Shown here: positions 2,174-55,485 of the stretch, one piece after another | How the letters are laid out: each line of letters begins with the position of its first letter | Position numbering within the stretch: position 1 is the stretch's first letter | From: Monocercomonoides exilis PA203 | Taxonomy: Eukaryota > Protista > Preaxostyla | Length of the DNA: 64,000 bases | Reading direction: 5' to 3' | Assembly: GCA_001643675.2 (NCBI GenBank) | Contig: LSRY02000002.1 | Location: 620,001-684,000 of the forward strand | The notes under the pieces: model-generated | The model's database searches: none | Told to the model about the DNA's origin: nothing | The model's input: the letters and a program-made list of their open reading frames with translations, nothing else | Position numbers and translations under genes: made by a program

Positions 2174-2543
2174 TTTTGTAATTAAGAGCACAATAGCGAT
2201 GTTATTGAGTTACCGTTTAAATATGTACAAAAAAGAAAGAATATATTAAAAATCAAAAATTCTCATCAAACATGTTTCCTTTATTATTTCCTCTTGCATG
2301 GTCATACACCTTGCATTTTCTTGATTTTGTTTTGATACTTCTTCGATTTGTGATATTTTGCTCATTAAGATATTTAAGATAAATTAAATAAGAAAAAAAT
2401 ATGAAATTATTATGTTTTAAAAAAAAGAATTGTATTATGAAGAATAGCTATTACTATTTATATATATTTTCTTTTTATGTGAAAGATATGAGAAAATAAT
2501 TGATGTCGATATTTATTATAGTCTCATTGATCAAAGACAGCTA

Positions 2544-33211: not shown

Positions 33212-34347
33212 TCAAATACGAATGTGATCTATATCAATAATTGGCTCTATTATTCCTCCATTTCTTCTTGTAATCTTTCTAAGATCATGCAAAGCTTTTC
33301 GTTTCTCTTCAACTTCATATTCTTTGATAAACTGTTCCATATAATGACTAATCGTAGCATGAAGTGAAAACTCCCTAATTCCCCGAACATCCAGCGACTG
33401 AAGAAGCTCTGTGATGTTTTGCCGCGAGCAATCAAAATAAGCCCAAGTCGGCCGAGCAAGCGGTACTGTCTCATTTGAATCATTCTGCTCCAATGAATGG
33501 GAAGAAGCAGAGGAAGAGGTTGAAGAAGAAGAAGAAGAAGAAGAAGAAGAAGAAGAAGAAGATGATGATGATGATGATGAGACCAACGAATTAGACTGCA
33601 TTTGAAGAGAACTTGCATTTTGCTGATTTAAATGTGTTGGCTCTGATTTATGTGCAGTGAATGGAGTGAATGGCTGAAGTTGTTTGTGCATAGTTTGCAT
33701 CGCTGAAAACGTAAGAGGAGTCAAATTAGCAGGAAAAGCAGCCAAGTGCGAATACATCTCAGATGCTTCCTTGCCAGACTCGCTCTTATCATCTTGCTCA
33801 ACAACGATTTTCCTCCTTCTGTTGACTGCAGGCGGGGTAAAAGCGAGCCCAGGGTCATAAACATAAATGCGTCCCTTTTCGCCCGCAAACGAATAGTAAG
33901 TTCTCAGCACTCTATCTTTTCCCAGCACAAGCGCCCCAACGATCGACCTCAGAAGTGTGTTGTTTGTCGTGTTCTTCTTCTGGTTCATCTCTTCTTTCTC
34001 GACAAACTTCTGCAGGGCATTCTGAGCATCTTCTACATCTTCAGTCACTTGCCGCAGGAGTACAAGAGCAGAAATATAAGCATTGTATTTCTTGTGGCTT
34101 GTGTGGCTCGGCAGAGAAGAAGTAGCTCGAAGCTTGCGCTTTGTCTGGGAGGGGGAAATGGAATACAATGAAGGTGAAAGAGAAGGAGAAAACGAAGGAG
34201 AGAAAGAAGGAGAAAGTGAAGGAGAAGAGGAAGAGGAGGAGGAAGATGAAGAAGAAGATGAAGTGTCTGGTGATGAAGATTTGTTGGTGAATGGCTGCTG
34301 TGTGGGATGTGTGGATGTGATGGTTGTGGTTGAAGAAGATGAAGACA

Positions 34348-34378
<31 letters not shown>

Positions 34379-37300
34379 AGATGATGATGTGGAAGGAAAT
34401 GAAGGAAAAGAAACATTGGTAGAAGATGAAGAAGATGATAGAGGAGAGAAAGAGGAGGAGTAGAAAAGCGGAACAGGTGTTGGAAGAAGAGAGGAATTAG
34501 AAGCAGGTGGAGAAGCAGAAGGAGTAGCTACAGAAGAAGAAGGTGAAGAAGAAGCAGAAGAAGAAGAAGATTGAGATGGAGATGATGAAGGAACCGCAGG
34601 AGACAACTTCGCAAACAGCAATTCTGGTTTAACCTCTTTCTCAGATTCATTGCTGTTCTTATTATCTCCGTTCATTTCTTCTTCATCCTCTGAAATATCC
34701 ACCTCATTTTCTTTGTTCTCATTCCCATTCCCTTTCGTCTTCCCCTTCGCCTTTGGCTTCTCATTCGTCTTCTCATTCGCCTTGGCATTAGCCTGTGCCT
34801 GCGCCAATATCGACATTTTCTCCCCATGCATCAGCACCTGCTGCTTCTCCTCTTTGTCCACAGGGCACCCGTCTTTCTTCATCTCCGTCTCGATCTCTTT
34901 CACCTGCCTCTCCGCAGCCCGCTTTGCCGCCTCCGCATCGCTCACTTTCCCTTTCAGCTCTCCAAACTTCTCTTCAGATATCCTTTTTTTCTGCTCTGCC
35001 ACTTCGAATATCTCCGCGAACTCGCTGCACACGCGGCCAGACGAAAGCGCCAGGCGAAGAAGAAACTGGAGCAGAGAAAGGCGGTCGGTGCAGCTGAGGC
35101 GGAAGTAGCCAGCGTGCGGAAAGAGAGGGACAATGGCGGGTGTGTCGGGGGAAGGTGGATAAGGGAGACTGATGATGGAAGAAGAAGGAGAAATAATAGA
35201 GGAGGAAGAGGAGGGGGAAGAAGAAGAAGGAGAAATTGAATGAGAAGAAGGAGAAGTGGAAGAAGCTGTCTGATTAGGTTTTAGTTGTATTGATGATGAA
35301 GAGCCAACAGCCTGAGATGTGTTCTGAGATGAAGGCAGTGCTTTCACAGTCAAAGAAGATGGACTATTGCTAGCAGGAGAAGTGGACGAAAGAGAATTCA
35401 TAGAAGAGAAGAAAGGGGTTGGAGTGGAAGAGAGAAGAGGATACGGAGAAGGAGAAGGAGAAGGCGAAAGAGGAAGAGGAAGAGAAGGCGATGAAGGAAG
35501 AGAAGGAGACAGCTGCTTCACAAACAGCTGGGAAGGTGACTGGGCAGATTTGAGATTCGGTTGGGAGTTGAGGGAGTGATGTGATGAAGAAGCAGAAGAA
35601 TTTGAAGAAGCAGAAGAATTTGAAGAAGCAGAAGAATTTGAAGAAGAAGAAGAAGAAGAAGAAGAAGAAGAAGAAGAAGAAGAAGAAGAAGAAGAAGAAG
35701 AAGAAGGAAACAGAGTAGTTTGATTGGGAGCTGTTGAAGATGGATTGCCAGTTGAGGACAATGGAGAATTCACAAATGGCTTCCATATTTTCGTCTGATC
35801 AGAAGAAAGAAGAGCAAGTGGAGAATTAGGCGGTGTGGGTGAGAGGAAAGGCGAAGCCTCAGGTGAAGAAGAAGAAGAAGAAGCAGAAGGAGAAGGAGAG
35901 AAAGGTGAAGAAGAAGAAGAGGAAGAGAAAGAAGCAGAAGGAGAAGCAGAAGATTTCTCATTATCTGCAAACACCAGAGTCGCAGTTTCTCTCCACTTCC
36001 CTGTTGACGAGTCAAGCTCGCCGCGCATCTTCCTCTCCTTCATCAGCTCCTGCGTGGCAGCACACTCCGGACAGAACCACTTCTCTGCATTTGGCACAGA
36101 GGAGATGCCCAGGCAGACGATGTGATAGGAATGCAGACATGTTCCATCGCAGCAGATGAGCTTGCCCTCCTTCTTGCAGATGAAGCAGATGTCTTCGTTC
36201 ATGTTGAGCGGCTCCAGAGGGACAAGAGGATGCGATGAAGACTGCTGATGCTGTTGATTCTGCTTGCTTCGAGAATACTTGGAGAACCGGCGAGATGAAT
36301 GAGAGCGATGGTATCCGTCGCTTTCTGAAGTGTTGTTTTCGTCGTCTTCATCTTCGCCTTCTTCGTCGTCATCTTCTCCCTCCTCCTCATCTTCTTCATT
36401 CACACTCTCAGCGCTCTCTTCTTCATCTCTCCTTGTTTTACGTTTAGTTCCTTCGCCTTTCCCTTCATCACCCTCCTCCTCTTCATCCTCTTCCTCTTCC
36501 TCTTCTTCTTCATCTTCTGACTCAGAAGTTCTTAATGCACGTCTTTTCTTCCTCATGTTCGTGTTCCTATTCTCTTCTTCTCTCTGACTCCCTCTTTTAG
36601 TCCTCTCAGCCACATTCGATCTCTGGCTGCCATTTCTCTTTCTTTGCGAAGACAGCGCTGAGTCCAAACGAGAAGAAGAACCAGAAGCAGACGAATAAAG
36701 CGACAGCACCTCAGAAAGTGCGTCCATCTCCCTCTTCTCCTGTGAACGTGTTGAATACCCCGTCTCGTTCGCTGCCGACGCCACATCCAGCATCATCTTC
36801 ATAATCTTCTCCTTCGAATGAATAGGAGCCCTTCTGTCGCTTCTGCTATTGCTGCTACTGCTGCCACCATTGTCATTGCGTCTTGTGTGATATCTTTCAT
36901 ATTCATTGTATCCTCTTTCTCTTTGATTCGTTCTGTGATTTCTATTGTCTCTTTGCCTGGTCTGATTCCTCCGTGTGCCGTATGAGGTTATGTCTGATAG
37001 AGAATCCAGCTCATCTGACCGGGCAGATGAGCCATCTGACACATTCTCCACCTCATCTGATGCTGATTCCCTTCCTTTTTCATCATCATCTTCTTCTTCA
37101 TTTCCACTTTCCTCTGATGAATAATCCAACATCCTCCGCTTGCCTCGTTCTCTTCCCCTTGTTTTGTACCGCTCTGCTGCCAACTCCTTCAAATCCATCT
37201 TTTCAGCCACCTCAGCCAGTTCTCTGAACTTCGACCGCGTTTCTATCGTTGCGTGTGTCAGCAGCCTCGCCAAGTTCTCCTCTGCTCTTTTCTTCTTGTT

Positions 37301-39043
37301 CTCTTCCTCTTTCTTCTTCTCCTCTTCTCTCTTTTTTTGCTCCAGCACCTGCAGGCGGTGACTTTTGCGCTGCGGATACAGCTCTTCGTACTTCTTCTTT
37401 TTGGCTGCTATTTTCTGCTTGTACGACAGACTTTGCTGTCTGCTCGACCGCTTTCTGCCATAAGACGAGTAATCATCGCTGCTTTCGTCCATCTCAATGG
37501 GATCATCTTCATCCTCTTCCTCCACATCGTCTTCGTCGTCTTCTGCATCTTCCCCTGAAAGCTCGTATTCTTTGTCGTCATCTGCTTCTTCTTCTTCCTC
37601 TTCTGCTTCTGCTTCTGCTTCTGCTTCTGCTTCTGCTTCTGCTTCCTCTGAGCCAGCTTCATCAACTTCAATTTGCTCTTCTTTTTCTTCTTCCTCTTTT
37701 TCTTCTTTGCTTTCTTCATTTTCATCTCCTTCTTCATCTTCCAGTGACAGTCGCTTTTTCTTTTGACTTGGAAGTGCTTTTGTTGTTTCTTTTGCTATTT
37801 TGTATTTTTCGTTTGTTGATTTTCTCAAATCATCATTTTTATGTTGTTTTACTTCTTCATTTTGATCTATTTCTTCCTCTTCCTCCTCCTCTTCATCATC
37901 ATCTTGTTCACCATCTTCTCCCTCCTCCTCCTCCTCCTCTTCTTCTTCTCCAAAGTCGTCTTCATCTTCATCATCTGGATCTTCATAGTTATCAGACCAT
38001 TTCTTTCTCTTTCTTCTTGTTTCATTTGGCTTATACTTCTTCTTTTTGTTTGTAAAGTTTGATTTGCCCCTTCTCTTTCCTCCTTTTCCTCCTCTTATTC
38101 TCGAAACCTCTTGTTCTCCTTCCCCTTCAACTTTGCATTGATCTTCCAACTTCACTTGATCTTGAGATGAAGTCATCACACTTACTACAAATTCTCCCCT
38201 TTCTGCTTCCTTTTCTTGAGATTCTTCATCTCCGCTTGATTCAACAACTATGGGCGTTTTGTCATGTTGCTTGTCCTCTGGCGAATCGTAGGCAACATCA
38301 ATGGAATGTGTTGATTGATACACAACGCTCTGCTTGATGCCCTGCAAAATCATTGCCACTCGCTTTATGGGGAAATCATTAGACGTTTCAAAAACTTCGT
38401 CATATTGAAGCAAAAATATTCCCAATGGAAATGCCCAAAATGTTGGTGATACACATTTCTGATGTCCAGGATGTAGTTTTAGCTCGTCCATCTCTTCAAT
38501 TAATACACGTAAAATTGATGAAACTGCTTCGCAAAAACTTATATTACATGTGTAGTCCATAAGTGCTTCTTCTATTACGCTGAAAGGAAAGATAGAATAA
38601 TTTAGCGCATGGGAAACAGCGATCAGTCCATCCCACACGTCAAGTGCTTGAGATATATATTTAGACGGAATCCTAAAAGACGACACCAAACTTGGTATCT
38701 TAAAAATATATTCATTCTTCTTTCGTGGAATAAAAATATCCTCAATCGGATATTTTGGTGCAACATCAATCGTGTGGTCATTCCCCTTGTCGTGTCGATA
38801 ATTGTAATATGTAACTTCTCCATCATCGTCCTCAATTATTTGTAATGCAATGAATTTTTTTGGTTTTTTTTGGAAAGATAATTTTGGAAAAGGCAGCATC
38901 TTTGAAGTTAAATTCAATAATGTTTTCTTTTCTAAATTTGATAATAATTCGCGTGAAGATCCTAATGGTTTTATAGGATTCATTTGCCCTTGTGATACTG
39001 TAACGGAGTGATGCGAAGTTGATTCATCCTGCCAACTTGTCAT
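33212..39043 (-). CDS. DDT-PHD-WHIM chromatin protein (BAZ/ACF1/PTM-like ISWI partner)
   Basis: DDT (ALDVWDGLIAVSHALNYSIFPFSVIEEAL), PHD (CFICKKEGKLICCDGTCLHSYHIVCL...WFCPEC), WHIM1 (YFRLSCTDRLSLLQFL), WHIM2 (LGKDRVLRTYY) and WHIM3 (WAYFD...LLQSLDVRGIREFSL). Confidence 0.85.
35586..35705 (+). repeat. 18-bp tandem repeat x3 plus (GAA)~22 microsatellite, encoding SNSSAS repeats and poly-Ser on the minus strand
   Basis: GAAGAAGCAGAAGAATTT three times, followed by an uninterrupted GAA run. Confidence 0.9.
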
Positions 39044-39279: not shown

Positions 39280-42200
39280 ATGACACGCTATGTCTTTATG
39301 TTTGATGAGCATCCTAATGTTTGTCTTATGGATTATTCTTTATAATTAATGATTGTTATCTTTTTTATGATAAACATTGCTTTCATTTTAAATGCAACTT
39401 CGTTCTGTCAAAAATTTTGATTTATCGAAATTCTAACTATTTAGCCTTCCAAAGAGATTCTTGGAGGAAAAGGATATGGTCTTGCAGTAATGAGCAAGAT
39501 TGGATTGCCTGTGCCATATGGTTTCACAATTACAACTGAAACATGCAAATATGGAAAGGATCTTCCAGAAGATGTTGTTAAGCAGATTGACGAGCACTTG
39601 ATCAAGTTGGAGAAATCATCAGGAAAGAAATTCGGTGATCCTGAGAACCCTCTTCTTGTGTCTGTTCGTTCAGGTGCAGCTGTTTCCATGCCCGGTATGA
39701 TGGACACAGTCCTCAATCTTGGACTTAACGATGACACTCGCGCCGGACTCGCAAAGAAAACAAACAATCCTCGTTTTGCTGCTGATTCTTATCGTCGTTT
39801 CATGCAAATGTTCGGAAATGTTGTCATGGAAATAGAACACGACAAATTCGAAAAAGAACTGAACACAATCAAAAACAAGCACGGGAAAAAGCTCGACACA
39901 GAACTTACCACTGAAGAACTCGATGAAGTCATTGTTGCATACCGCGCTCTCATTCAAAAGGAAAGAGGTGAATTCCCAACTGATCCAAAGAAACAATTGC
40001 GTATGGCCATTGATGCTGTGTTCTCATCATGGATGAACCCACGTGCAATTGCATATCGTAAATTGAACGATATCCGTGGACTTATTGGAACAGCTGTGAA
40101 TGTTCAGATGATGGTCTTCGGAAACACAGGAGAGACTTCCGGAACTGGTGTTGGATTCACTCGCAACCCATCAACTGGTGAAAATGTTGCATATGGTGAA
40201 TATCTTCTTAACGCTCAGGGAGAAGATGTCGTTGCTGGTATTCGTACTCCTCATTCAATCAGCGTCATGGAGAAAGAACTTCCAGATACATACAAGCAAC
40301 TCATGGATGTGTTCCACAAACTCGAGGAACACTTCAAGGATATGCAAGATTTGGAATTCACAGTCGAGGAAGGAAAATTGTTCATGCTTCAATGCAGATC
40401 TGGAAAACGTACTGCTGCTGCAGCTGTCCGCATTGCAGTCGAAATGGTGAAGGAAGGATTGATCACAAAGGAAGATGCCATCATGCGCATTGAACCAAAC
40501 AGCGTCACACAACTTCTTTTCCCACAGCTTGATGCTGAGGATAAGAAGAAATTCGAAGTGTTGGCAAAGGGTCTTCCAGCTTCACCTGGTGCTGCCATTG
40601 GAAAATTGGCATTCACAGCTGAAGAAGTGAAAGAACGCGTTTCAGCAGGCGAGAAAGACGTCCTGTTGTGCCGTGAGGAAACATGCCCAGATGATATTGA
40701 AGGAATGAACTTGGCCAAGGGTATTGTCACTGCTCGTGGTGGAATGACAAGGTTTGATATTTGTGATAATATAAGAATATAGTATTATTGAGAAAAAGAA
40801 AGAAAAGAATATTTTTGAAAACATGGGTGTTACAAGATGCAAACCTAAAACGTTCCTTACTGAAATAAATCATGTGGAATGTTTTTTCAAGCTCAACAGG
40901 GACTGAGACATCCTTTTATTTTTTTTTCAGTTTTTTGTTATTTTCAAAAACCTCAATATTTTATTTTATATCGTTTTTTTTTTCATTTTTCATTTATAGC
41001 CATGCTGCTGTTGTTGCTCGTGGTATGGGAAAATGCTGCGTCTGCGGATGCGGCGACCTCCATATTGATGCAGCTACAAAGACAATTTCAGTTGGATCCA
41101 AGAAATTCGGACCTTCAGATTACTTCACACTTGATGGATCAACCGGTCAAGTTTATGCTGGAAAAGTCCAAGTTAAGGATGCTGAAGTTTCAGGAAACTT
41201 CGAAACAATCCTCAACTGGGCTAACGAATTCAAGAGACTTGGTGTTAGAACAAATGCTGAGACTGAAAGAGATGCAAAGAAAGCTCGTGAATTTGGTGCT
41301 GAAGGTATTGGTCTGGCAAGAACTGAACACATGTTCTTCCAGGGAACAAGAATCCGTGCTGTTCGTGAAATGATCTTGTCAGAAAATGTTCAAGGACGTG
41401 AGGTCGCTTTGGCCAAGCTTCTTCCTCTCCAGAAGGGAGACTTCAAAGATTTGTTCACAGTCAACGAAGGACTTCCAGTGAACATTCGTCTTCTTGACCC
41501 ACCGCTGCATGAATTCTTGCCGCAAACACCAGCAGAAATGGAAGAGATGTCAAAAGAAATGGGTGTCTCAGTTGAGAAAATTAAAGTTTTGTGTACAAAC
41601 ATGCACGAAACTAATCCAATGCTTGGGTTCCGTGGATGCCGTCTCGGCGTTGTCTACCCAGAAATCAGCCGCATGCAGGTTCGTGCCATCATGGAAGCTG
41701 CTTGCGAAGTTGTTGAATCAAGAGCTGACTTCAACTTCAAAGGTGTTGAAATCATGATTCCAGTTCTTGCACATATGGAAGAAATGAAAATGCTGCGTGA
41801 ATTGTCTGTTGGTGTTGCAAACAAGGTTCTTGAAGAACACAAACTCACCATTGAACGTGTTCCATACACTGTTGGTGTGATGATGGAATTGCCACGTGCA
41901 TGCATCTGTGCTGATGACATCGCTCAATATGCTGACTTCTTCTCATTCGGAACAAACGATCTTACTCAGACGACTCTTGGATATTCTCGTGATGATGCAG
42001 GAAAATTCATCCCATTGTACTTGGAGAAAGGAATCTACGAAAAAGATCCATTCCAGGTTCTTGATCAAAATGGTGTTGGTGAATTGATCAAGATGTCTGT
42101 TTCAAAAGGAAGAACAACAAAGCCCAACCTGAAATGCGGTATCTGCGGTGAACATGGAGGTGAGCCTTCATCTGTTGAATTCTGCCACCGTGTTGGCTTG

Positions 42201-42290
42201 AACTATGTTTCATGCTCTCCATTCCGTGTTCCTGTTGCTCGTATTGCTGCTGCTCAAGCCGCCATCAAGGAAAAGTGTGCTGCTAAGTAA
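39280..42290 (+). CDS. PPDK: Pyruvate, phosphate dikinase, 3 exons
   Basis: Exons 39280-39318, 39445-40751 and 41000-42290. Motifs LGGKG, PLLVSVRSGA, GEDVVAG, spliced GGMTS|HAAVVARG (phospho-His), FSFGTNDLTQ and CGEHGG. Confidence 0.97.
40825..40913 (+). ncRNA. Intronic box C/D snoRNA with two rRNA guides
   Basis: Terminal stem GGGTGTT/GACATCC, degenerate C box AAGATGC (40834-40840), D' CTGA (40860-40863), C'-like ATGTGGA (40872-40878) and D CTGA (40903-40906). The D guide TCAAGCTCAACAGGG is the exact complement of conserved LSU rRNA CCCUGUUGAGCUUGA. The D' guide pairs with LSU UAGGGAACGU. Confidence 0.85.
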
Positions 42291-42951: not shown

Positions 42952-45900
42952 TCAAAGAGAATCAGTGATAAAATGGATGCTTGTTGTTGAACACGATTCG
43001 CTTCCCGACCTGCCACTTTCATTGATTCTGCGATCCCCATCATAGCCAGTATTAAGCCCTATTGCATCAGAAATGGTGAGCATCACAGCTCCAGCTGGAA
43101 AGCGTTGGATAAACTCCCGCTTTAGCTCGTTCAGTGATGGTCTCTCCTCTACTGACTGTTTTTCGCACCTTCCAATCAACACACAGAGTGAACTTCCTTC
43201 GATGGCTTTACAACCCTGCCTTTCTCCATTCACAATCTTCTGCCCCGCCACCTCTCCCTCATAATCTCCAAACGGGATCTGAAGTGTCAAGCACTCCCAC
43301 AGCATCATCCCAATTGAAAACACAACTGATTCCTTCGTCGCACCCATCTTCTTGTTCATCAGCAGCTCAGGCGCCTTCCACCTCAGACACTCTTTTTTGT
43401 AATAATCATCCTCATCCTCAAAAGCCGAAGAAGGCAAAGAGTCACTATCATCATCATCGTCATCGCTTGTTGATGTCACAACAGTCGATGAAGAGATGGA
43501 AGACGAGTCTGAATCATCAGATGAAAGGAAATCAGAGTGTATCACAATGCAGATGACCATGTGCTCTGAGAATAACACAATATGGGGACTCAAATTTGAA
43601 AGCGATTGAAGTGGATTTTCCATTTCATCAAATGAGTGGAGTGCGAGATTGGCCACCCAGAACAGGATCTGAGCAGCTGTTTGCTCCCTCTCCTGAAAAG
43701 TGCCAATAGCCATTTCCTTTGTCTTATTCTTTCCATGCAGTAGCATGAACAACGAATCCCTCAAGTCCACAATCAGCTTTTCGTGTGGTGATGAACATGC
43801 CATTGCATCCACCAGATTCGACATTGATGAAGTGGTTGGGCACAGACTCTCCGATCGAACAAATGTGGATTCTGTGTCTGAAGTGTCTGTTGTTGAGGTG
43901 GATGAGATGGATGGTGATGGCGTTCTCTTCCTTATCTCTTCCTCCTCTTTTTCTTCAACCTTCTCCAGCGCCCATTCTGGGATTTTGTCCGAATCCTTTC
44001 CAAGGATGTATTCAGTTGACCCGCTCTCACTCAACAAATGCTCTGACGACTCCGAGTGTCCCAGGCTTTTCTCATATATTCTCTTCTTCATTCTCTCTTC
44101 ATTCTTCTTCTCTGCCTCTCTTTCTGCTCTCCTCCACTGCTCCTCTGGCGACATCTCCATCGTCACCATCTCAAATGCCTTCGGATCCTTTCTGATGTTA
44201 TCGTTCACAATCTCTCTCAGATCTTCTGCTTCATTCTTCACCTTTCTCCATCGAACAACAAACATCACAAGTGAGATAAGAACAACCAATAATATCGCAG
44301 AAAGCACAATCACTATCAACAACCATGAAGATTTTCCTTCCTTTCCTCCTTCAGAAATCCTTTCATCTCCATTTGTTTTTGGTTCACTTTTGTTCTTCAG
44401 AATGAAAGAATCTGTTGATGATGGATTTTTTGCATCCCCAAAAAGAATGCACACGCTCACTTCTGTATCTTCTCCACAACTTCTGACCAGCTCTTTCTCC
44501 GCAATCCCTTTCACTTCAGTCTCTGATACATACCCTTCCTCCAGAAATGAATACTTCACAATCTCTTTCTCTTCTCCAACCTGTTTCACAATCATGAATG
44601 ACAGGTTGCATGGCAGAAGAAGAGTGCCTCTGAACACAATATTCAATGTTCCTTCATTCTCCTCTGTTTCAACTGATCGAAGAATGGGGATGAACAACAC
44701 CGATTCTCGCTCTGATCCAATCCCCCTCATCACACATCCATCATTCAGAATCCAAAGTGATGTATTTCTTTCCAATCCATCTCCCCCTTTCAAACTTTTC
44801 ACATCCAGTGTGCCTGAACCAGAGCAAACAATGTTCCTTCTCACAGAAGGATATTTTGTTATCGATGGATTGTTGTTCAAAAATTCTCCTTTCTCGATTG
44901 TCACTTCCCCACCAGAAACAGATAGTGCTCCATCATGTGCATTCCATATCGTTGTGTCTCTCACTTTCCCTTCACTCTCAGATATGTCTGCAACAGACCC
45001 ATTCCACCTGCATATCTCTTCAGCTGCATCTGCATTCACCTTCAAAGTGCTTTCTGTCTCGCTCCCATCAATTCTGCACCCATCCAGCACAACATCCCTG
45101 CTCTTCCATACTCCTATCACTCCTCCCTTTGCTCCTAAGCTCTGGCACATCTCAAATGAACAGTTAGACAGCTCCAACTTTGCTCTCTCGCATTGACTAG
45201 TCACTGCTGCTGCATTCTCTCCAGCACTCGAGATGTTCACAAACACAGCTCGACTCACTTGCACACTGCTCGCTCCATCTCCGCCTGCTGCTTCCTCCGC
45301 CTCCACCACTGACCCCTTCTCCGTCCTCATCCTATCTGCCTTCAACTCGTCAATCACCATACTCCCTTCTCTCACCACTATCCCTCCTCCTTGGCACTCA
45401 ACATTCCCTATCCTCAGCTGTCTCACAGTCACAGCTCCTCCACACCTCAGCAAGCACTCACCACACACATCCTCCATTTCACACCCCCTCATCTCCAGCT
45501 TCCCACTTGCACACTTCATGAGAATAGGAACTGATGCCTTGTGTCCATCTCCTTCCAATGAACTAAATCTCACACGATCAAACATCACATTTCCTTCCTC
45601 CATCCAGAATAGACTTGCGTGTGATGTGGGGAAGACTCGCGGCATCTTGAACTCCACCAGCTCCACAGCAGTGCTCCCTCCCACACCAATCATATATTCC
45701 CTGGTGTAGGATATGCCCGACCCAATCTTCACACTCGCCATCTCCCAGCTCTTCGACCTCACCACCATGCTCAAAATATCTATCTCCATCTCCACCTCGC
45801 TCTCCCCATCCACTGCCAGCATCGAGTTGAACTCTGCCACCACATGATCCAGTCCATATCCCAATGTCAGACACGGCTGCTCCACTGTCCCGCACTTCCG

Positions 45901-48900
45901 CCAGTTCCTGCCGCCTTTTCCAAGCACACTCGACACCACAATCGTCGCTGCCTGATACACTGTGATCAGATCCATCAGGTTCACTGGCGTCTCGCTCCGC
46001 TTGTCCACCCCATAGATTGCATTCCCTTGGATATACACCTCCTGCCGCAGATCCATCTTAAACTGGCTCTCGTTGATCTGCCGGCTGATGTTCGCACACT
46101 CAACAAAGATGTCCCGCCCCACAAACGCATTGTTCCCACTCAACGACACCTTCTCAAACACAAAGTTCAGATCTCCTCCAAGCTCTGTCCCCAAATACAC
46201 TCCGCCTCCCCGCCCTTGCGTTATCGAGCAGCTGCTTTGCACAATCTTCCCTCCCTTCATGCGGAACTCTCCTCCCTCATTCAGCCGGAACTCCACCACT
46301 CCACCTTTCTTGCTCTCTCCTGCCTTGCATGACTCGAATGTGCTCTCATTCACCACCACCTTCACACTCCCTCCACACACACTCTCCACAACACACGGTC
46401 CATCATCCTCCCGCTCCGCCATCACAAATGTCGATCCATTCACTGTCACACTCGTTCCACTCATCCCTCCTGCATTTTCCAATCTACCGATATCATTTAT
46501 ACTGCTGCTCACAACACTGATTGCACATCCCTCGTGATACTCCTGCGAGCTCATCCGCACCTCCCTCAGGTTGCAGCTCACTCCTTCAAACACCATCATC
46601 ACACAGCCCTTCACCTTCATTCGCTCAAATCTCACATCCACCACCACCAATACCCCTGCTTTCACAACAACAACAGATCCACACAACTCCCCGCCAGATC
46701 CTGCTCCTCCAACCACACATCTTTCCATTTCCAGCAGTGTTCCTGATCCACTCAAAACCCCTTTCTTCTCCACTCCACCTGAACCCCCAACCACCATCTT
46801 CATCCTCCGAACACACAGCGTCCCAGCGTATGCGATGAATGGATCTTCACTCAACACACTCTCCCCTCCTTTTCCACTGAATACAAGCTCATCCTTCACA
46901 TCCTCCTCCTCTCCTTCTCCTCCCACACCACTCACAACCATGTTCTTCATTGTCCAGTCATCCTCCACTCTCGCCTCCCCTTCCACCACAATCTCTTTCA
47001 TCTCCTCTGTCCTCTCCACTTGCTCCATCCCCTTCCACAGCGTCTCACACGGATCGTCCACATTTCCACACCGCATCACATCCTGTCCTTCTGAGCTCAC
47101 ATGTATCTTCCGGCTCTTGAATCCCACAACATATCGCAGGAGATCTGTCTCGTTCCTGCTTTCATCGCTCCCAACAAATCCGTTCCCGTTCTCTTTCATC
47201 CCCTGATAGTCAAACCCAAACGAAGTTGTTGTCACAGTTTTGTTCAGATCTCTTGCCAAAACAAACATGTGCTCTCCCACTTTTGCACTGTTTAATTTGA
47301 ACGAAACCTCCTTCAGCTTAAACGGGTGAACAATCAGCGACCCTGAGCAATCCACAAACAAAAATCCTCCTCTCCCAAATGCAACTGAGCACTCGCATTC
47401 TTCTGCTGTTGTGTTCTTCAGCATAAGAGTCTGCTCACCCTTCACAATCATTTTCATCCCTCCACCCTCTTTCTCTTCTGGTGCTTTCACCTTCTTCATT
47501 GCACAACCTTCAATCATCACATTCGATCTGAACTCAAAAGCACTCTCACTGAATGTTGCCTTTTCTATCGAGCATCCAACGAGCTCCACCTTTCCGCCTG
47601 AAGTCTTCATCACTCCATATCTCATCACACTTCCACTCTCAAACTGGAATATGCAATCCGTCATGCTCAATGCCCCATCTTCTGTCTCCGAAAGCAGCAC
47701 CACTTCCTGCCCACTTGCAAGCATCTCCGGAAGCACAAACTCAACTCCTTCAAACCCTGCTCTCTCACTGTTCTCAAACACACACTTCCCATCTCCTCCA
47801 CTGATCTCCTCCCCAATCTCCATCACACACCTTGTGACTGCTCCTGTTCCTGCCCCATTGCACACCGTTCTTATCCCTGACACATCAAACCAATCTGCAA
47901 CCCTCATCTTCCCTTTCACCAAGATCTTAGCTCCCTCAACTGTTTCACGATCTGCGTTCTTCACCCCTCTCCAAAATGTTTCACATGGCATTTTCTCACT
48001 CCCACATCCTATCATGTCACATCCGCCTTCCCTCACATGCACTTCTCCCCACTTATGCTCAACAAGAAACACCACAAGTTCCACCGCCTCTTCAACAAAT
48101 CGCACCCGATCCACTCCTTTCATATCAACAATCACCTCCCCTTCTCCGTTCTTCACTGCAAACCGGAATCGAGATCGAGTCACTGTCTTGTTCAGATCCT
48201 CACACTCCACAAACACATCTCTTCCACATGCTCCTGCGTTCTCTGCAAACTCAAGCCCATCAAAATTCATATCTCCCATTCTTGTGCTTGCAACATTCAA
48301 ATATATTCCTCCACCTCTTCCACTTTCACCATTCACACAACAACTCTCCAACGCTCCATCCGTGATGCACAAGCTGCTTCCTTCACTCACTTCGCAGTGC
48401 ACTCCTCCTCCATCCCCATGAGCAGATTGACATCCATTGAATGTGCTACCTTCCGTAATCTCCACGCTTCTCACATTCTCCATCCACACCACTCCCCCGT
48501 CCGTCGCATCCACTTCCTCCACACATCCCTTGTGCATCCCAAACTCAGCTTCTCCGCTCCCTTCAATCAGCCCCTTCCCAGTTCCTCCCACATTCGATAT
48601 GTTCGTGTTGTTCATGATGAGCATTCCTCCCTCCATCTTCACAAAGCCTCCATCCACTCCAAAACTCACACCTTCCACTGCCACTTGATTCATCCGGACC
48701 TCTCCTCCGGTTTCCCTCACTATTCTCATCCATGTCTCCCACCTCACATCTGCTCCTGCTTCCTCTTCCCCAGCATCTGTTCCTGAACCTGCTCCAAACG
48801 CACAGTTCATCACAATCACCATACCAACACTCACACTGATCAGCCCATCCACTTCCTCCGATGCCACCTCCGGCAGTCTGAAATTCAGGCGGCTGAGCGT

Positions 48901-51900
48901 CAGTGTTGTCTGCGAGTCTCCAATGCTCTGCCTGAAGCACCCATGTTCTCTGACCTCCAAGCTGCATCCAGCACTTTTCCCCCGCACTGCCAGCGATTTC
49001 CCCTTCCGATCAATCACATAATCCATCCAGTTTCCGTTGTTCATCTGGATCGTCGTCTTCTCCTCTCCCATGTTCATAAACCCATCGATGAACCTGTCAC
49101 AGGGCGAGATCTCGCTTCCACACGAGTCTGCTGCTGTGCTCCTCCCTGCCTCCACATACACAATCGCCCCTTCCACAGGGAACAGATACTTTTTCACTGA
49201 CAAGTCGATCACTGTGCCTGTCACAGAGTCAACCACCCACACATTCACCTCTGGCGTGCTCTCCTCATCCACTGTCCCCATCCACAGATCCTCCCGCAGC
49301 ATCACCTCTGGCTCCCCACACACAACAAACACATCCAGTCCCTTTGCTGCAGCATTCCCCTCAAACACATCCTCTCGAAGCGAGTACTTCGCCTCCCTGT
49401 CCTCCAGCTCCGCAAACACTCCTCCTCCATATCCTGCTGTTCCCACCACTGCACACCTCTCCACTCTGTTCGAATCAAACACAAACTCCCCTTTCCCTGC
49501 AACACTCACAAATGCACATCCTCCACAAGACGGATTCCCCATGCACACATCCTGTACAAATGTGCTCTCCTTCACCTCCACTTTCTGCCCTTCTCCCACT
49601 CTCCCTGCAAACACACCTCCATTCCCGCTCTTCCGTGTCTTTCCCTCCACGCTGATGTTCTTCGCAAAAACACTCGCCCTTTCTTCAAACGCAACAACAC
49701 TTCCATCATCCATTGTTGTTCCCTTCACTGTACTGTTTTCCACCCTCAGTGCAGATCCCTCCCTCACACCAATCAGCCCACTTTCTGCTCCACAAACAAC
49801 ATTCTCTATCTCCAATCCTTCAAACACTCCTTCACCTCCACACAGCTCAAACAACTCAAATTCCCCTGTGTTCATATTCTTCATCTTCAACCCATTCACA
49901 ACCACCTTTCCTCCACTCGCTTTTATCAATGAATACTTCATTTTCAACTGCCCATTAACTTGCTCCACCTGGCAGTTCTCCAGCTTCAGCTCCTCTCCCT
50001 TGCACGCAAACAGACACTCCCATCTGGCTGCCGAAAACTCGTTGGGAACAGCAAACGATATGTTTTTCACAAATACATTCACTCTCGTTTCCAACAGCCC
50101 TTCTCCCTCCCCTGTTCCATCATTACGCACATGAACACTTGTCTCTCCACCCTCAATAACACCCTTCAACTTCACTCCCTGCAACTCAAGCACTACATGA
50201 TCTTTCAGCTCAAATGATTCCATCGCCACCACTTCTCCACTTCCAACCACTCCTCCAAAACGCACTTTCAGCGCCTGCTTAATTGTTCGACACGGTGCAT
50301 ATGCCATCCCACAACCTGAATGATCATATCCCCAGTCTGATTCTCCCCCAACATATGCCGTGCCTCCAAACTTATCAAGATATGCAACAAGTGGAATTCC
50401 AAAAGTATCACCGGTTGAGCAACGCTCATATCCCATCAGATCCCCCATCTCCATCCCACCTCTCTCAAAATTCATTGAGCCTCCACTCACAATAACACTC
50501 AAATCCTTCCCTTCCACAAACACATTCTTCCCCTTCCACGCTTTGCACACCTCAAACTCCAGCCCTTTCAATTCAAACCCACTCACACCATCTGAACACA
50601 ATAAAAATACCCCTCCTCCCAATCCCCTTCCTTCTCCTCCTTCTCCTTCTCCTTCTCCCTCAGGCACTTCACATCCTTCAAACTTTGTCCCCTCTATCAC
50701 TACTTCTGCTCCCTCACCCTGATTCACAATCATCCCTCCTCCTCGAAGCCCATTCCCACCTCTGCACTTTCCTTTGATCGTGCAATTCTCCACATGGACA
50801 TCTCGCAATTGACCAGGTCCACTCTCTACTCCAATGCACCCTCCATCTCCTCCTCTGTGCCAAGCACAGCCAAAAACACTGTTGTTCACCTTCATCTTCC
50901 CACCTCCTCCAATATCAATTGGCACTCCCATAAACCCTATTTCCCCGCTTCCCTCAACCACAAACTCATCCAATATCACTCCGCCTCCCTCAACTTTCAA
51001 CAGCCCACCACTCACACCATCAAATCCCTCTTCGCCAGACAGCCTCATCACACACCACATCATCTCCAAATCACCTCCAATACACTCAATCAAACTACCC
51101 ACTGCTTCACTCTTCACCAACACCCCAAATGTGCAGTTTGCCATCTGTGTTCCTGTTGTTGTGTGAATCATCCCATTCCCAACTCCCGCCTCTCCCCACA
51201 CCACATTCACATTTGTTCCTCTCTCCACACCCTTCAGCTCCCACTTCTGTCCGCTCATCTCCACCTTCTCGCTCCAGCTGAACCCTTCATTCACAATTAT
51301 CTTCTTCTCACTGTTCGCAAACCTCAATCCAACAAGCTTCCCAATAGTCGCACATCCATATCCTTCAAACCCACACCCTGAAAAGTCTCGCTCATTCACT
51401 CCTCCAACATACTCTGCGATGCCTTCCACTTCAATCATGAAAAACATCAGCGGAATCAGAAAACTCTCATCACCACCTTCAAACCCCATCGCTTCTCTCA
51501 CCCTCCCTTTATCTGTTGCAATCACTCCCACAAACTTTCTTCCACTCACTGCTTCACTCAGATCTTCAGCTTCCACAAAAACATTGTCTCCTCCTCTCAC
51601 TGCTTCATTCTTTCCCACACCTGTCCCAAACGCCACTCCACACACCTCATAATCCCATCCTTTTGATTCACTGCCTCCCTCCATTTTCAAAAACATCCCT
51701 CCTCCACAACCTCCAACTCCTTCTCTCAAACTGCTCCTGCACTTTTCAACCAATGTTTCTTCCTCGCTCCTCCCCATTCGAAAATATCCTCCTGCTTCTA
51801 TCTCCATACACACTCCCCCTCCACATCCTTTCTTCACACAACAACCAGAAAAGCTGCTGTTCCCAATCACCACACTCTCCCCATCTCCAATCACGCACCG

Positions 51901-54900
51901 CACTCCACTCCCATTCCCTGCTGTGCTCTCAATCCTGCTGAAAGTGCACTTCTCTATCTCCAGATTGCTCCCTCCTCGTCCAACCACAATCCCACTCAAC
52001 GAGCATCTGATCCCCTCAAATTTCGTCTGCTCAACAACAAGCTTCCCACTGGATGCATAATATACCAATCCATTTTCACATTCCACTGTTCCTCCACTAA
52101 TGTTTGTCTGGGAAATCAATCCTTCTCCATTATTGCTCACACAGACCATGCAGCTCCCCCCAAAGCTCAGCCCACTCACAGCCACCTGTCGCACACTCAA
52201 CTTGCCTCCGATACATTGCATAACCACATATTCGATCCTCTCCCCTTCCCCTCCCTCGAAATTGCACTGTCTCACCTCCACACTCCCACTCCGGCACGCA
52301 ATCACGCTTCTTCCTTCACCCACACTTGCTGGAAGCGATATCACCAGATTCACAATCGATGTTGTTGCTCCAGCTGTTGTGATCACTCCCTCTGCTCTCC
52401 CACTCTCTCTGCTCTCTATCACCACTCGAGGTGGAGATGCCTGTCCTTTCACCACAACAACTCCATTCATAAGTTCAACCTCACCTTTCACAACAGCCCC
52501 GCTGTTCGCCACAACTGTTATCCCTGCCCCAGTCCCATGCTTCCTGATCGCATAATCCACACTTGCACACTGCACATCTCCAAATCCACACATCTCCCAG
52601 TCTCTCTTGTTCAGTCCTCCAACATGATATTCGCTTGGCTTGCTCCGCAGATACACCACAAGTGGAATCACATTCGCTTCATCCCCATTCTCAAAACCGC
52701 ACACCTCACTCAGATTGCTTTCATCAATTGCAAACTTCAGCCGCTCTCTCTTCGCCACCTCTGCCAATCGAGGCCCTCTCACGAACAGCTTGCTCCCTGC
52801 TTTTGTTGCCACACACCCTGCGAACGATGCTCTTTCAATCACAAAATCATATCCTCCTTCCTTCACTTCAATCATCATCCCTCCTCCACACCCTCCTCCA
52901 CTGCTCTGCCCTTCTCTCGCCTCACACCCACCAAACAAAACTTCGCTCTCATTCCCCACACGAACACATGCTCCTGATTCCATCCTCACTACTATTCCTC
53001 CTCCATCCCCGCTCTCACATCGGCATCCCTGCATCGTCACATTGTTCATCTGCAGCACTTCACCTTCTGCCACATTCTTCGATATCACACTCCCATCTCC
53101 CCTCAACCTCACAATATTCCTGAAAGTGGTGAATGATATTGTCACTTTCCATTTCCCTTCAACACCAACAATTGGCGCATCTTCCAGCACAAAGTTTCCA
53201 ATCTCAACCTGCTCCATTCCCACTTTCCCCTCTCCTGCTCCAGACATGATCAGTGATGCACCAAATGCATTCAGAGATGAATGTCCGTTTGATGGCCGCA
53301 TCCGCATCCTCTTCAATTCCACACTTCCACTTCCCCTCACAACAAACAGTTTCATCTCGTGCTTTGCGTGTGAGTGCTCGATTGTGAACAAGCTCACAAA
53401 AACTCTTCCGCTTGTCACACTAAACATACTGTCTCCATTCATCATGCTGCTTGTGCTCACAACAGTCTCTTCTACACCCTCCCCACACACACTCAGCTCT
53501 CGAATTCCAGCACTTATTTCTCCCGCCTCTGATATATGTGTTCCTTTCCCCAAAAATATCCTCGACTCAAATTGAGTCATGCACTTCCCCAGTGAATGGG
53601 AAATTGTTCTGCATCCCGATTCGTCAGATAACCCACACAGCTCATCCCCGTCATTCCCACTTGTTGAAACAAAGCAAGAGGTGAACAACTTTTTCGTTGT
53701 TGGAAGCCAATCTTTTTCATATTTACCTGTGCCCGTATGAAAGAGCCGTTTTTCGTTAGTGTTTGTTGTATAACTCTCTTTGAAAGGTGTTGATGTGATA
53801 TTCACATTTGAACTTGTTTGAGTAAGATAAACATCATGCCCCAATGGATTCTCACCATTTGTGCAAGAACATTCGTGGAAAAACAAAAAGAAAAATGCTT
53901 TCAAATTCGTTTGATCTCCTGGGCATTTAACAAAATGGTGGCGAATTGCACCTCCTTCTTTAACAGCCGAACATTTGATAAATTGGCAGCTTCTCATTGC
54001 AAAAATGCTGGAGTATGACCAACTCATAACAGCCCCGTAATTTCCTTTATTTAAGCATTTCACAAATTGGCAATCAATAACCTGAGCTTGCCCTCCATTT
54101 CCATCGTCAGATCCAAGACAGCTTGTTGGAGAATCAATGGGATAAACGCTTAAGCAGAAAGCACTTCCTCTTCCTTGTTCGTTCACCCTATTGTTTTTGA
54201 ACAGACATTTTTGAGTTATTGTGCATCCGTTATTCCCAGCCATATTCAAGCTTCCTCCTTGAGTCTCTGATGTATTATTCAGGAAAAATATTTCAATGAG
54301 CATTGCTCCTTTTGAAGTTGTTGCATCGATGGCACCTCCTCCTGTATATGCATAACATCCTGTGAAATTGCATCTCGTCACACTCAGCAACATGAAAGAA
54401 GATTTAACACTTAAAGCCCCTCCTGATCCGGTATCAGTTCTGCAGCCTTCGAATGTGTCGTCCTCAAATGAAGCCGATGCATCAAGTTCTCTTCTTCCTT
54501 CGCTCCCATTGAAAATATCGTATTTGTTCGGATGTCTGATGTTGCCTTGATAGGTGCAGTTTCGCGAGACAACAGATGATGATGGCATGCTCAGTGGAGG
54601 AACAATAGCCCCATCCAGCACATCCTCCACTCGCATAAATTCCACGCATTCAAGCCTTGTTTTGCAATTGTATTGTCCTCCATCCACGAACCTCCACTGG
54701 CTCCAAACTGTGATGTTCGCAAATCTCGAGCCGATCACTTCAGCATTCCCAAGTGCTGGCGATACAATAAACGGTGATGATCCCCACAAGCTGAATGATC
54801 CAAAGCTGCACGCAATAATCTTTGCCTCTCCAAGCTCGTTCTCACTTCTGCTCCATGATTCAGGATGAAGCATTGGAGGCATCATTTTCTCTTCCCCAAC

Positions 54901-55485
54901 TATTTTCAGGCTTGTATTTTCCAGAAGGATTCTTCCTCCGATGCACAGAATTGGTGATTCATCTGCGCATTCCATCATCATCTCCACACACTCGAAATGC
55001 AAAAACGAGTTTCTTCCCACATCAATTCCCTTTCCTTTCTCTGATCCAACAACTTGCAGTTTGCGTATCGCAACTGAAGAATTCCATGCTCCAATCAGAC
55101 ATCTTATAATGCTTTTCACATCTTGTTGTTTGTCATTAGATATCAATAAATCTTTATTATCAATATATTCTTCTCTTCTTTCTCGAGTTTCCTTTTCTGT
55201 TTCTTTTTCAATCTTCTCTTTAACATGCTGTTCTTTCGTTCCGTTCAAAATCAAGTCTTTGAAATGCCTTCCAGAACGTTGAACTTCATTTACCAAATTT
55301 TTATTTTCGTTTTCCATTTCATTGAGTCCTCTTTCAAATGGATTTCTGCCTTTTTCTCTGAAATCAATAGAAATTCCTTTTTCTGCTCCTTCTTGTGCGA
55401 CCACACTTTTCTGGACAGACGAATGGACAATCACCAAAAATATCAATATGCAGATACCATTGCATTTTGCCAATCCCACGCGCAT
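42952..55485 (-). CDS. Giant receptor-like protein: PMP/beta-helix ectodomain, TM helix, degenerate TKL-type kinase domain (pseudokinase)
   Basis: First ATG at 55485 (MRVGLAKCNGICILIFLVIVHSS, signal-like). GGG/CGxxxxPC repeats, TM WLLIVIVLSAILLVVLISLVMFVVRW, and kinase C-lobe RWKAPEL, VFSIGMMLWECLT, RPSL. No recognisable HRD or DFG. Confidence 0.88.
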   Translation of the reverse strand: MRVGLAKCNGICILIFLVIVHSSVQKSVVAQEGAEKGISIDFREKGRNPFERGLNEMENENKNLVNEVQRSGRHFKDLILNGTKEQHVKEKIEKETEKETRERREEYIDNKDLLISNDKQQDVKSIIRCLIGAWNSSVAIRKLQVVGSEKGKGIDVGRNSFLHFECVEMMMECADESPILCIGGRILLENTSLKIVGEEKMMPPMLHPESWSRSENELGEAKIIACSFGSFSLWGSSPFIVSPALGNAEVIGSRFANITVWSQWRFVDGGQYNCKTRLECVEFMRVEDVLDGAIVPPLSMPSSSVVSRNCTYQGNIRHPNKYDIFNGSEGRRELDASASFEDDTFEGCRTDTGSGGALSVKSSFMLLSVTRCNFTGCYAYTGGGAIDATTSKGAMLIEIFFLNNTSETQGGSLNMAGNNGCTITQKCLFKNNRVNEQGRGSAFCLSVYPIDSPTSCLGSDDGNGGQAQVIDCQFVKCLNKGNYGAVMSWSYSSIFAMRSCQFIKCSAVKEGGAIRHHFVKCPGDQTNLKAFFFLFFHECSCTNGENPLGHDVYLTQTSSNVNITSTPFKESYTTNTNEKRLFHTGTGKYEKDWLPTTKKLFTSCFVSTSGNDGDELCGLSDESGCRTISHSLGKCMTQFESRIFLGKGTHISEAGEISAGIRELSVCGEGVEETVVSTSSMMNGDSMFSVTSGRVFVSLFTIEHSHAKHEMKLFVVRGSGSVELKRMRMRPSNGHSSLNAFGASLIMSGAGEGKVGMEQVEIGNFVLEDAPIVGVEGKWKVTISFTTFRNIVRLRGDGSVISKNVAEGEVLQMNNVTMQGCRCESGDGGGIVVRMESGACVRVGNESEVLFGGCEAREGQSSGGGCGGGMMIEVKEGGYDFVIERASFAGCVATKAGSKLFVRGPRLAEVAKRERLKFAIDESNLSEVCGFENGDEANVIPLVVYLRSKPSEYHVGGLNKRDWEMCGFGDVQCASVDYAIRKHGTGAGITVVANSGAVVKGEVELMNGVVVVKGQASPPRVVIESRESGRAEGVITTAGATTSIVNLVISLPASVGEGRSVIACRSGSVEVRQCNFEGGEGERIEYVVMQCIGGKLSVRQVAVSGLSFGGSCMVCVSNNGEGLISQTNISGGTVECENGLVYYASSGKLVVEQTKFEGIRCSLSGIVVGRGGSNLEIEKCTFSRIESTAGNGSGVRCVIGDGESVVIGNSSFSGCCVKKGCGGGVCMEIEAGGYFRMGRSEEETLVEKCRSSLREGVGGCGGGMFLKMEGGSESKGWDYEVCGVAFGTGVGKNEAVRGGDNVFVEAEDLSEAVSGRKFVGVIATDKGRVREAMGFEGGDESFLIPLMFFMIEVEGIAEYVGGVNERDFSGCGFEGYGCATIGKLVGLRFANSEKKIIVNEGFSWSEKVEMSGQKWELKGVERGTNVNVVWGEAGVGNGMIHTTTGTQMANCTFGVLVKSEAVGSLIECIGGDLEMMWCVMRLSGEEGFDGVSGGLLKVEGGGVILDEFVVEGSGEIGFMGVPIDIGGGGKMKVNNSVFGCAWHRGGDGGCIGVESGPGQLRDVHVENCTIKGKCRGGNGLRGGGMIVNQGEGAEVVIEGTKFEGCEVPEGEGEGEGGEGRGLGGGVFLLCSDGVSGFELKGLEFEVCKAWKGKNVFVEGKDLSVIVSGGSMNFERGGMEMGDLMGYERCSTGDTFGIPLVAYLDKFGGTAYVGGESDWGYDHSGCGMAYAPCRTIKQALKVRFGGVVGSGEVVAMESFELKDHVVLELQGVKLKGVIEGGETSVHVRNDGTGEGEGLLETRVNVFVKNISFAVPNEFSAARWECLFACKGEELKLENCQVEQVNGQLKMKYSLIKASGGKVVVNGLKMKNMNTGEFELFELCGGEGVFEGLEIENVVCGAESGLIGVREGSALRVENSTVKGTTMDDGSVVAFEERASVFAKNISVEGKTRKSGNGGVFAGRVGEGQKVEVKESTFVQDVCMGNPSCGGCAFVSVAGKGEFVFDSNRVERCAVVGTAGYGGGVFAELEDREAKYSLREDVFEGNAAAKGLDVFVVCGEPEVMLREDLWMGTVDEESTPEVNVWVVDSVTGTVIDLSVKKYLFPVEGAIVYVEAGRSTAADSCGSEISPCDRFIDGFMNMGEEKTTIQMNNGNWMDYVIDRKGKSLAVRGKSAGCSLEVREHGCFRQSIGDSQTTLTLSRLNFRLPEVASEEVDGLISVSVGMVIVMNCAFGAGSGTDAGEEEAGADVRWETWMRIVRETGGEVRMNQVAVEGVSFGVDGGFVKMEGGMLIMNNTNISNVGGTGKGLIEGSGEAEFGMHKGCVEEVDATDGGVVWMENVRSVEITEGSTFNGCQSAHGDGGGVHCEVSEGSSLCITDGALESCCVNGESGRGGGIYLNVASTRMGDMNFDGLEFAENAGACGRDVFVECEDLNKTVTRSRFRFAVKNGEGEVIVDMKGVDRVRFVEEAVELVVFLVEHKWGEVHVREGGCDMIGCGSEKMPCETFWRGVKNADRETVEGAKILVKGKMRVADWFDVSGIRTVCNGAGTGAVTRCVMEIGEEISGGDGKCVFENSERAGFEGVEFVLPEMLASGQEVVLLSETEDGALSMTDCIFQFESGSVMRYGVMKTSGGKVELVGCSIEKATFSESAFEFRSNVMIEGCAMKKVKAPEEKEGGGMKMIVKGEQTLMLKNTTAEECECSVAFGRGGFLFVDCSGSLIVHPFKLKEVSFKLNSAKVGEHMFVLARDLNKTVTTTSFGFDYQGMKENGNGFVGSDESRNETDLLRYVVGFKSRKIHVSSEGQDVMRCGNVDDPCETLWKGMEQVERTEEMKEIVVEGEARVEDDWTMKNMVVSGVGGEGEEEDVKDELVFSGKGGESVLSEDPFIAYAGTLCVRRMKMVVGGSGGVEKKGVLSGSGTLLEMERCVVGGAGSGGELCGSVVVVKAGVLVVVDVRFERMKVKGCVMMVFEGVSCNLREVRMSSQEYHEGCAISVVSSSINDIGRLENAGGMSGTSVTVNGSTFVMAEREDDGPCVVESVCGGSVKVVVNESTFESCKAGESKKGGVVEFRLNEGGEFRMKGGKIVQSSCSITQGRGGGVYLGTELGGDLNFVFEKVSLSGNNAFVGRDIFVECANISRQINESQFKMDLRQEVYIQGNAIYGVDKRSETPVNLMDLITVYQAATIVVSSVLGKGGRNWRKCGTVEQPCLTLGYGLDHVVAEFNSMLAVDGESEVEMEIDILSMVVRSKSWEMASVKIGSGISYTREYMIGVGGSTAVELVEFKMPRVFPTSHASLFWMEEGNVMFDRVRFSSLEGDGHKASVPILMKCASGKLEMRGCEMEDVCGECLLRCGGAVTVRQLRIGNVECQGGGIVVREGSMVIDELKADRMRTEKGSVVEAEEAAGGDGASSVQVSRAVFVNISSAGENAAAVTSQCERAKLELSNCSFEMCQSLGAKGGVIGVWKSRDVVLDGCRIDGSETESTLKVNADAAEEICRWNGSVADISESEGKVRDTTIWNAHDGALSVSGGEVTIEKGEFLNNNPSITKYPSVRRNIVCSGSGTLDVKSLKGGDGLERNTSLWILNDGCVMRGIGSERESVLFIPILRSVETEENEGTLNIVFRGTLLLPCNLSFMIVKQVGEEKEIVKYSFLEEGYVSETEVKGIAEKELVRSCGEDTEVSVCILFGDAKNPSSTDSFILKNKSEPKTNGDERISEGGKEGKSSWLLIVIVLSAILLVVLISLVMFVVRWRKVKNEAEDLREIVNDNIRKDPKAFEMVTMEMSPEEQWRRAEREAEKKNEERMKKRIYEKSLGHSESSEHLLSESGSTEYILGKDSDKIPEWALEKVEEKEEEEIRKRTPSPSISSTSTTDTSDTESTFVRSESLCPTTSSMSNLVDAMACSSPHEKLIVDLRDSLFMLLHGKNKTKEMAIGTFQEREQTAAQILFWVANLALHSFDEMENPLQSLSNLSPHIVLFSEHMVICIVIHSDFLSSDDSDSSSISSSTVVTSTSDDDDDDSDSLPSSAFEDEDDYYKKECLRWKAPELLMNKKMGATKESVVFSIGMMLWECLTLQIPFGDYEGEVAGQKIVNGERQGCKAIEGSSLCVLIGRCEKQSVEERPSLNELKREFIQRFPAGAVMLTISDAIGLNTGYDGDRRINESGRSGSESCSTTSIHFITDSL

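Follow-up and report, generated by a model that had tools for sequence, protein, structure and literature searches.

Can the intron of a gene in Monocercomonoides, a protist without a mitochondrion, carry a second gene, and what would the product of that gene do? The question is raised by the pyruvate phosphate dikinase (PPDK) gene of Monocercomonoides exilis PA203. A first-pass annotation had proposed that its second intron contains a dual-guide box C/D snoRNA aimed at the peptidyl-transferase centre. We analysed the window of 64,000 nt at positions 620,001-684,000 of contig LSRY02000002.1, and coordinates given without a contig name are window positions.

The PPDK gene and its second intron

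The spliced PPDK frame is open over 879 aa and is encoded by exons 39280-39318, 39445-40751 and 41000-42290. Database searches were performed exon by exon, and the joined protein was a local translation made to check the frame. The parts of the gene are as follows.

39280..39318, + strand: PPDK exon 1 (frame check; splice joint 39318>39445 in RNA contigs)
39319..39444, + strand: PPDK intron 1, 126 nt, without a snoRNA, used as a control (same position in Blattamonas and Streblomastix)
39445..40751, + strand: PPDK exon 2, PPDK_N and first half of the mobile domain (Pfam PF01326, PF00391)
40752..40999, + strand: PPDK intron 2, 248 nt, phase 2 in Ser449, snoRNA host (frame check, RNA contigs, orthologous introns)
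41000..42290, + strand: PPDK exon 3 with His450, PEP-binding domain and stop (frame check and Pfam)

The mean intron in the M. exilis genome is 119 nt (PMC8767320). Intron 2 has GT..AG ends, and the frame check confirmed that its 248 nt split AG/C of Ser449 immediately before His450. In contigs assembled from RNA runs, both PPDK introns have been removed at GT..AG joints. The intron had been described as splitting the catalytic Ser-His codons. It does lie inside the Ser codon, but the catalytic residue is His450 and not the neighbouring Ser. A special meaning of the Ser-His position found no support. Exon 3 had no exact match in the assemblies searched, and a PPDK search of 50%-identity clusters returned, among the matches listed, only distant PPDKs of at most 62% identity. 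Elsewhere in the window there are four very long unbroken ORFs of 1775-4193 aa (2544-12578, 14469-19796, 33212-39043 and 42952-55533), some with strong strand skew.

An island with the layout of a box C/D snoRNA

The 89-nt island annotated within intron 2 was recovered in full, with its terminal stem, its D and D' CTGA boxes, a C box degenerate to AAGATGC, and an end 86 nt 5' of the acceptor. Its elements are listed here.

40825..40913, + strand: box C/D snoRNA gene, 89 nt, predicted; 7-bp terminal stem 40825-40831/40907-40913; 0 differences from the contig-41 paralog
40834..40840, + strand: box C, degenerate, AAGATGC; GA and UG core retained; relatives have ATGATGT
40841..40859, + strand: D' antisense candidate; possible target LSU G5075 (own numbering), equal to yeast G2939; weak
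40860..40863, + strand: box D', CTGA, from sequence
40872..40878, + strand: box C' candidate, ATGTGGA, degenerate; a variant common to the U25-type snoRNA of the M. exilis genome
40887..40902, + strand: D guide; 15 nt complementary to LSU helix 74, followed by an unpaired A; the +5 base, A40898, faces LSU U4226
40903..40906, + strand: box D, CTGA, canonical, preceded by A

Two of the seven base pairs in the terminal stem are G-U. Relative to RUGAUGA, box C carries U2 to A and A7 to C changes, and the kink-turn GA and UG core is present. Four bases separate the stem from the GA of the C/D motif, which is non-canonical. M. exilis also encodes U3 snoRNA (two copies, 103 bits, on contigs C6 (L032:1501-1723) and C68 (L033)) and a U25-type RNA, and both have canonical box C cores, unlike AAGATGC. 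Fibrillarin genes were found at three loci. No Rfam family matched the island at gathering and E-value thresholds. Such a blank is not valid as evidence of absence, because the Rfam U25 model, like the U14 model, had no match in the M. exilis genome, and a pattern search did find the U25-type RNA. The ATG of the candidate C' box starts a 472-codon frame (40872-42290) that reaches into exon 3. This frame is probably due to chance, since its counterpart in the PPDK paralog is shorter (440 codons).

That paralog lies on contig 41 and is 97.8% identical. Its protein is entered as 'M. exilis PPDK2' in the database, and because its flanks are unrelated, it is a duplicate and not an allele. Between the two genes, the island showed no difference in 89 positions. 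The remainder of intron 2 differed at 11 of 159 (p=0.007 vs the island), and the whole of the intron DNA outside the island at 19 of 285 (p=0.005 vs the island). Four-fold degenerate sites differed at 25 of 412 positions.

The D guide is complementary to the LSU rRNA of M. exilis

The rRNA reference was one full rDNA unit from the M. exilis genome (contig C79), and own numbering refers to this unit. Its rRNAs are very long (SSU about 2995 nt, LSU about 5500 nt) and have AT-rich expansion segments. The full 15/15 complementarity claimed for the D guide was confirmed on this LSU. Pairing starts at position 2 from box D and places position 5 opposite U4226 (own numbering). The probability that a random intron-like 15-mer would match the LSU is 6.3e-5 per site (analytic), and the D guide was the longest rRNA complement among 550 CTGA-adjacent sites in the 64-kb window. 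The duplex has a predicted energy of -28.4 kcal/mol, compared to -15.6 +/- 1.7 kcal/mol for shuffled guides, and was reached by 0 of 60 shuffles. The genome has 18 copies of the 15-mer, in the two PPDK introns and at 16 other places, eight of which were inspected and are rDNA. An 11-nt rRNA complement at 10815, within a 3344-aa ORF, was rejected as chance. A metagenome pattern scan for the guide plus box D gave 13 matches, none with an upstream box C and most within ORFs, and these were also judged to be chance.

By the +5 rule, the predicted target corresponds to yeast U2408, as first annotated, with further backing from conservation in the paralog and in Streblomastix. The site lies in LSU helix 74. 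The D-guide target is close to the peptidyl-transferase centre, and one rRNA position there is probably methylated. The equivalence to yeast U2408 and E. coli position 2066 was assigned with Psi2416 and Um2421 of a cross-species table (PMC7672448) as reference points for the count.

Collectively, the boxes, pairing and conservation make it highly probable that PPDK intron 2 hosts a nested gene for a methylation-guide box C/D snoRNA. Trimming, snoRNP assembly and methylation are here inferred from the established pathway. The spliced-out intron would be trimmed to about 80-90 nt, and the trimmed RNA would bind Snu13, Nop56, Nop58 and fibrillarin through the C/D kink-turn. The D guide would then pair with helix 74 and direct 2'-O-methylation to the U five bases from box D, the yeast U2408 equivalent.

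The D' element is a doubtful second guide

The annotation had described a dual guide, in which the D' element would pair in two parts with the LSU and methylate the equivalent of yeast G2939. A two-part duplex is predicted here too, but the LSU of M. exilis reads CAGGGAACGU, not UAGGGAACGU, with a C in place of the annotated U. The extra pairing, to UGGGUUU over a four-base loop, would aid the first segment, and extra pairing of this kind is documented in yeast (PMC5389607). Among rRNA sites for the element, the two-part duplex ranks best (-19.3 kcal/mol), and 3 of 120 shuffles reached it. The D' box is a perfect CTGA, and the element is the same in both paralogs. Against this, the first segment forms 9 bp with one G-U on the own LSU and was equalled by 97 of 300 shuffles (32%), and a rival site in an rRNA expansion segment has nearly the same energy (-18.8 kcal/mol). 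Bases 40847-40856 of the element fold onto 40876-40885 with an unpaired probability near 0, which is indicative only, as the program does not model protein-bound kink-turns. No counterpart of the element was found in the orthologous intron of Streblomastix, and G2939 has no mapped methyl in the five-species table (PMC7672448).

The second D' segment, AAACCTA, looks like a spacer, because it also stands after box C in the U25-type snoRNA of M. exilis, which targets the SSU. A spacer similar to AAACCTA is present in the Rfam snR71 consensus. Of the two guides, the one before box D is supported, and the D' guide to G2939 is weak: its first segment is at chance level and internally paired, and the element was not found in Streblomastix. 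A true dual guide is a minority reading, and methylation of the G2939 equivalent is something we regard as possible but doubtful. The D' element probably serves either as a structural stem or as a weak second guide.

The predicted site lies beside mapped methylations

No ribose methyl is recorded at the U2408 or G2939 equivalents in the table covering Euglena, E. coli, yeast, Leishmania and human (PMC7672448). The U2408 equivalent carries no 2'-O-methyl in the Dictyostelium map, nor in the Giardia map when read with an offset of 513 that was inferred from five other sites. The neighbouring position 2409 is 2'-O-methylated in the published maps of Euglena (Gm2897) and Leishmania (Gm655 beta). 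In Giardia, a metamonad, 2409 and 2410 are both methylated (Um1896 and Um1897, by the same inferred offset). A putative trypanosome Um654, which would equal yeast U2408, was left out of this comparison.

These neighbours raise the reading that the same snoRNA directs methylation at +6, the yeast G2409 equivalent, with or without methylation of U2408, through a shift of register by the unusual C/D motif. Methylation of 2409 in Euglena, Leishmania and Giardia is in keeping with this reading, +6 use is reported in Dictyostelium, and in yeast, unusual motifs move the target or give two of them, as shown for C'/D' motifs (PMC5389607). The box D of the island is, however, a canonical CTGA preceded by A, and Streblomastix, with a near-canonical box C, has the same +5 register. 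We consider the +6 shift a genuine but unlikely rival and retain the U2408 equivalent as the predicted target.

Some other oxymonads have a different snoRNA in the same intron

The first-pass annotation had pointed to Blattamonas, Streblomastix and Paratrimastix for comparison. Streblomastix shares the D guide, Blattamonas has another snoRNA, and Paratrimastix has no intron at this site. Streblomastix strix (246 nt), Blattamonas nauphoetae (164 nt) and an oxymonad-like organism from two ENA assemblies (hereafter the ENA gut oxymonad) all have the phase-2 intron. Each orthologous intron contains one C/D snoRNA, and across the four species, M. exilis included, box D ends 71-98 nt short of the acceptor. 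Guide targets of the relatives were assigned on M. exilis rRNA.

The Streblomastix intron has a stem, box C ATGATGT, an 11-nt identical D guide, the spacer A and CTGA in the same register, and its guide is predicted to have the same LSU target as that of M. exilis. In Blattamonas the intron carries an snR71/U29-like RNA (RF00479; E 0.42, below the gathering score) with a D' guide to LSU A2946. In the ENA gut oxymonad it carries a U25/snR56-like RNA (RF01298/RF01188; E 5.5e-4, below the gathering score) with a guide to SSU G1428. The M. exilis island contains neither the U25/snR56 (RF01298) D' guide to SSU G1428 nor the snR71/U29 (RF00479) D' guide to LSU A2946. The M. exilis candidates for these two families sit elsewhere.

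Contig C2, about 1174375-1174455 (L038:1456-1536), - strand: U25/snR56-type C/D snoRNA; canonical box C, D' CCGA; apparently intergenic
Contig C36, about 527350-527425 (L056), - strand: snR71/U29-type C/D snoRNA; guide to LSU A2946

The U25-type RNA on C2 has two guides, one aimed at SSU G1428 and the other at the U in the CCCU that follows. Two oxymonad-like PPDK genes from other assemblies (L036, L047) have kept intron 1 and lack the snoRNA intron. In Paratrimastix, the PPDK intron at aa 708 (L046:4057-4146) holds a U14-like snoRNA whose guide points to SSU C414; its match to RF00016 (E 0.18) falls short of the gathering score. Another Paratrimastix PPDK intron, at aa 442 (L046:3003-3200), has a box C-like ATGAAGA and a CTGA 74 nt before the acceptor, with no clear rRNA target. 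This may be an orphan snoRNA, at a distance of eight codons from the site of the oxymonad intron.

Together, these comparisons identify PPDK intron 2 as a lasting snoRNA host in oxymonads, whose occupant was replaced between lineages. Streblomastix is classified in another family than Monocercomonoides and Blattamonas (PMC13002328), which suggests that the U2408 guide is the older occupant. A tree of PPDK exon 2 did not resolve the oxymonads, so that no order of replacement was read from it.

If the intron is a long-lived slot whose content may be swapped by recombination, the M. exilis RNA could be a chimera that joins the D-guide half of an ancestral U2408 guide to a 5' scaffold derived from U25 and bearing a new D' target, G2939. 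A weak, post hoc similarity between the island and U25-type RNAs (p=0.004 and 0.012 by segment shuffling, in a set of 15 comparisons) is partly explained by the D targets of both starting with CCCU. We regard a chimera as improbable; if true, it would give two methylation sites near the peptidyl-transferase centre that are unmapped elsewhere.

A decaying, non-functional copy, with a box C too degenerate to assemble and an identity due to recent duplication or gene conversion, would account for the two deviant box C positions and for a mature product not being evident in ordinary RNA-seq contigs. It would not account for paralog DNA that differs on both sides of the island and not within it, or for the conservation of the guide in Streblomastix. 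Moreover, among the ten inspected of the 18 loci, the 15-mer was found at no non-rDNA locus beyond the PPDK introns. We consider decay very improbable. A chance rRNA match or a scrap of rDNA in an AT-rich intron would fit the lack of an Rfam match, but is effectively refuted by the orthologous guide in another oxymonad family, with which boxes, stem, spacing and paralog conservation agree.

PPDK as an abundantly transcribed host

The expression data were assembled contigs of ordinary RNA-seq. Contig depth was 2000-3800 over the PPDK exons and 11-19 over intron 2, and the centre of intron 1 was uncovered. The PPDK transcript is thus abundant in the RNA runs. One RNA contig stops at 40913, the predicted 3' end; the paralogs also begin to differ right after this base, which makes the stop ambiguous.

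The idea that hosting in PPDK ties ribosome modification to energy-gene expression was not supported, as relatives carry unrelated snoRNAs in the same intron and two oxymonad PPDK genes have no such intron. In a comparative study, broad expression emerged as the main requirement for host genes, and unrelated snoRNAs recurred in equivalent introns (PMC3511168). The abundant PPDK transcript and the changing occupant fit this general view of hosts better than a specific energy-ribosome link. PPDK is most likely a highly and constantly transcribed host. Its second intron has retained an snoRNA in oxymonads, and the occupant has changed between lineages.

Comparison with known guide RNAs

Intron-encoded C/D snoRNAs are exemplified by yeast snR54 in IMD4. 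In the literature, we found no paper on snoRNAs of oxymonads or other Preaxostyla, and the PPDK snoRNA thus brings intron-encoded guides to a metamonad lineage. With Arabidopsis U60.1F/U60.2F in FIB introns (PMC8053127) and Dictyostelium CD38 (PMC8817022), the island shares the C, D', C', D layout and terminal stem, an antisense element of 10-21 nt ahead of box D, a single snoRNA in each intron and the sense strand of the host. It is unlike such guides in its box C, AAGATGC, its glycolytic enzyme host, its lack of an Rfam family and a target that is absent from the published maps consulted for comparison.

The helix-74 guides for Euglena Gm2897, Leishmania Gm655 beta, Giardia Um1896/Um1897, Um2417 (snR66) and Um2421 (snR78/U52) share the target region and the type of modification with the island. 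The base predicted here lies one to thirteen positions upstream of theirs, with no sequence evidence of orthology, so that the predicted ribose methylation falls beside, not at, the sites mapped in Euglena, Leishmania and Giardia. Members of U25/snR56 and snR71/U29 occupy the orthologous intron of relatives. AAACCTA and the C' variant are found both in the island and in the U25-type RNA of M. exilis, but the island carries the guide of neither family.

The island is an snoRNA of the ordinary kind, with a well-supported D guide and a doubtful D' guide, and calls for no new mechanism. The closest parallel for its setting is snoRNA mobility, or 'constrained drift' (Hoeppner and Poole 2012, PMC3511168), in which, as here, unrelated snoRNAs occupy positionally equivalent introns of broadly expressed hosts. 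The cases described there lie between supergroups, whereas here three different snoRNAs occupy one intron among four oxymonads, and the four-species comparison provides a compact case of snoRNA turnover inside a single intron.
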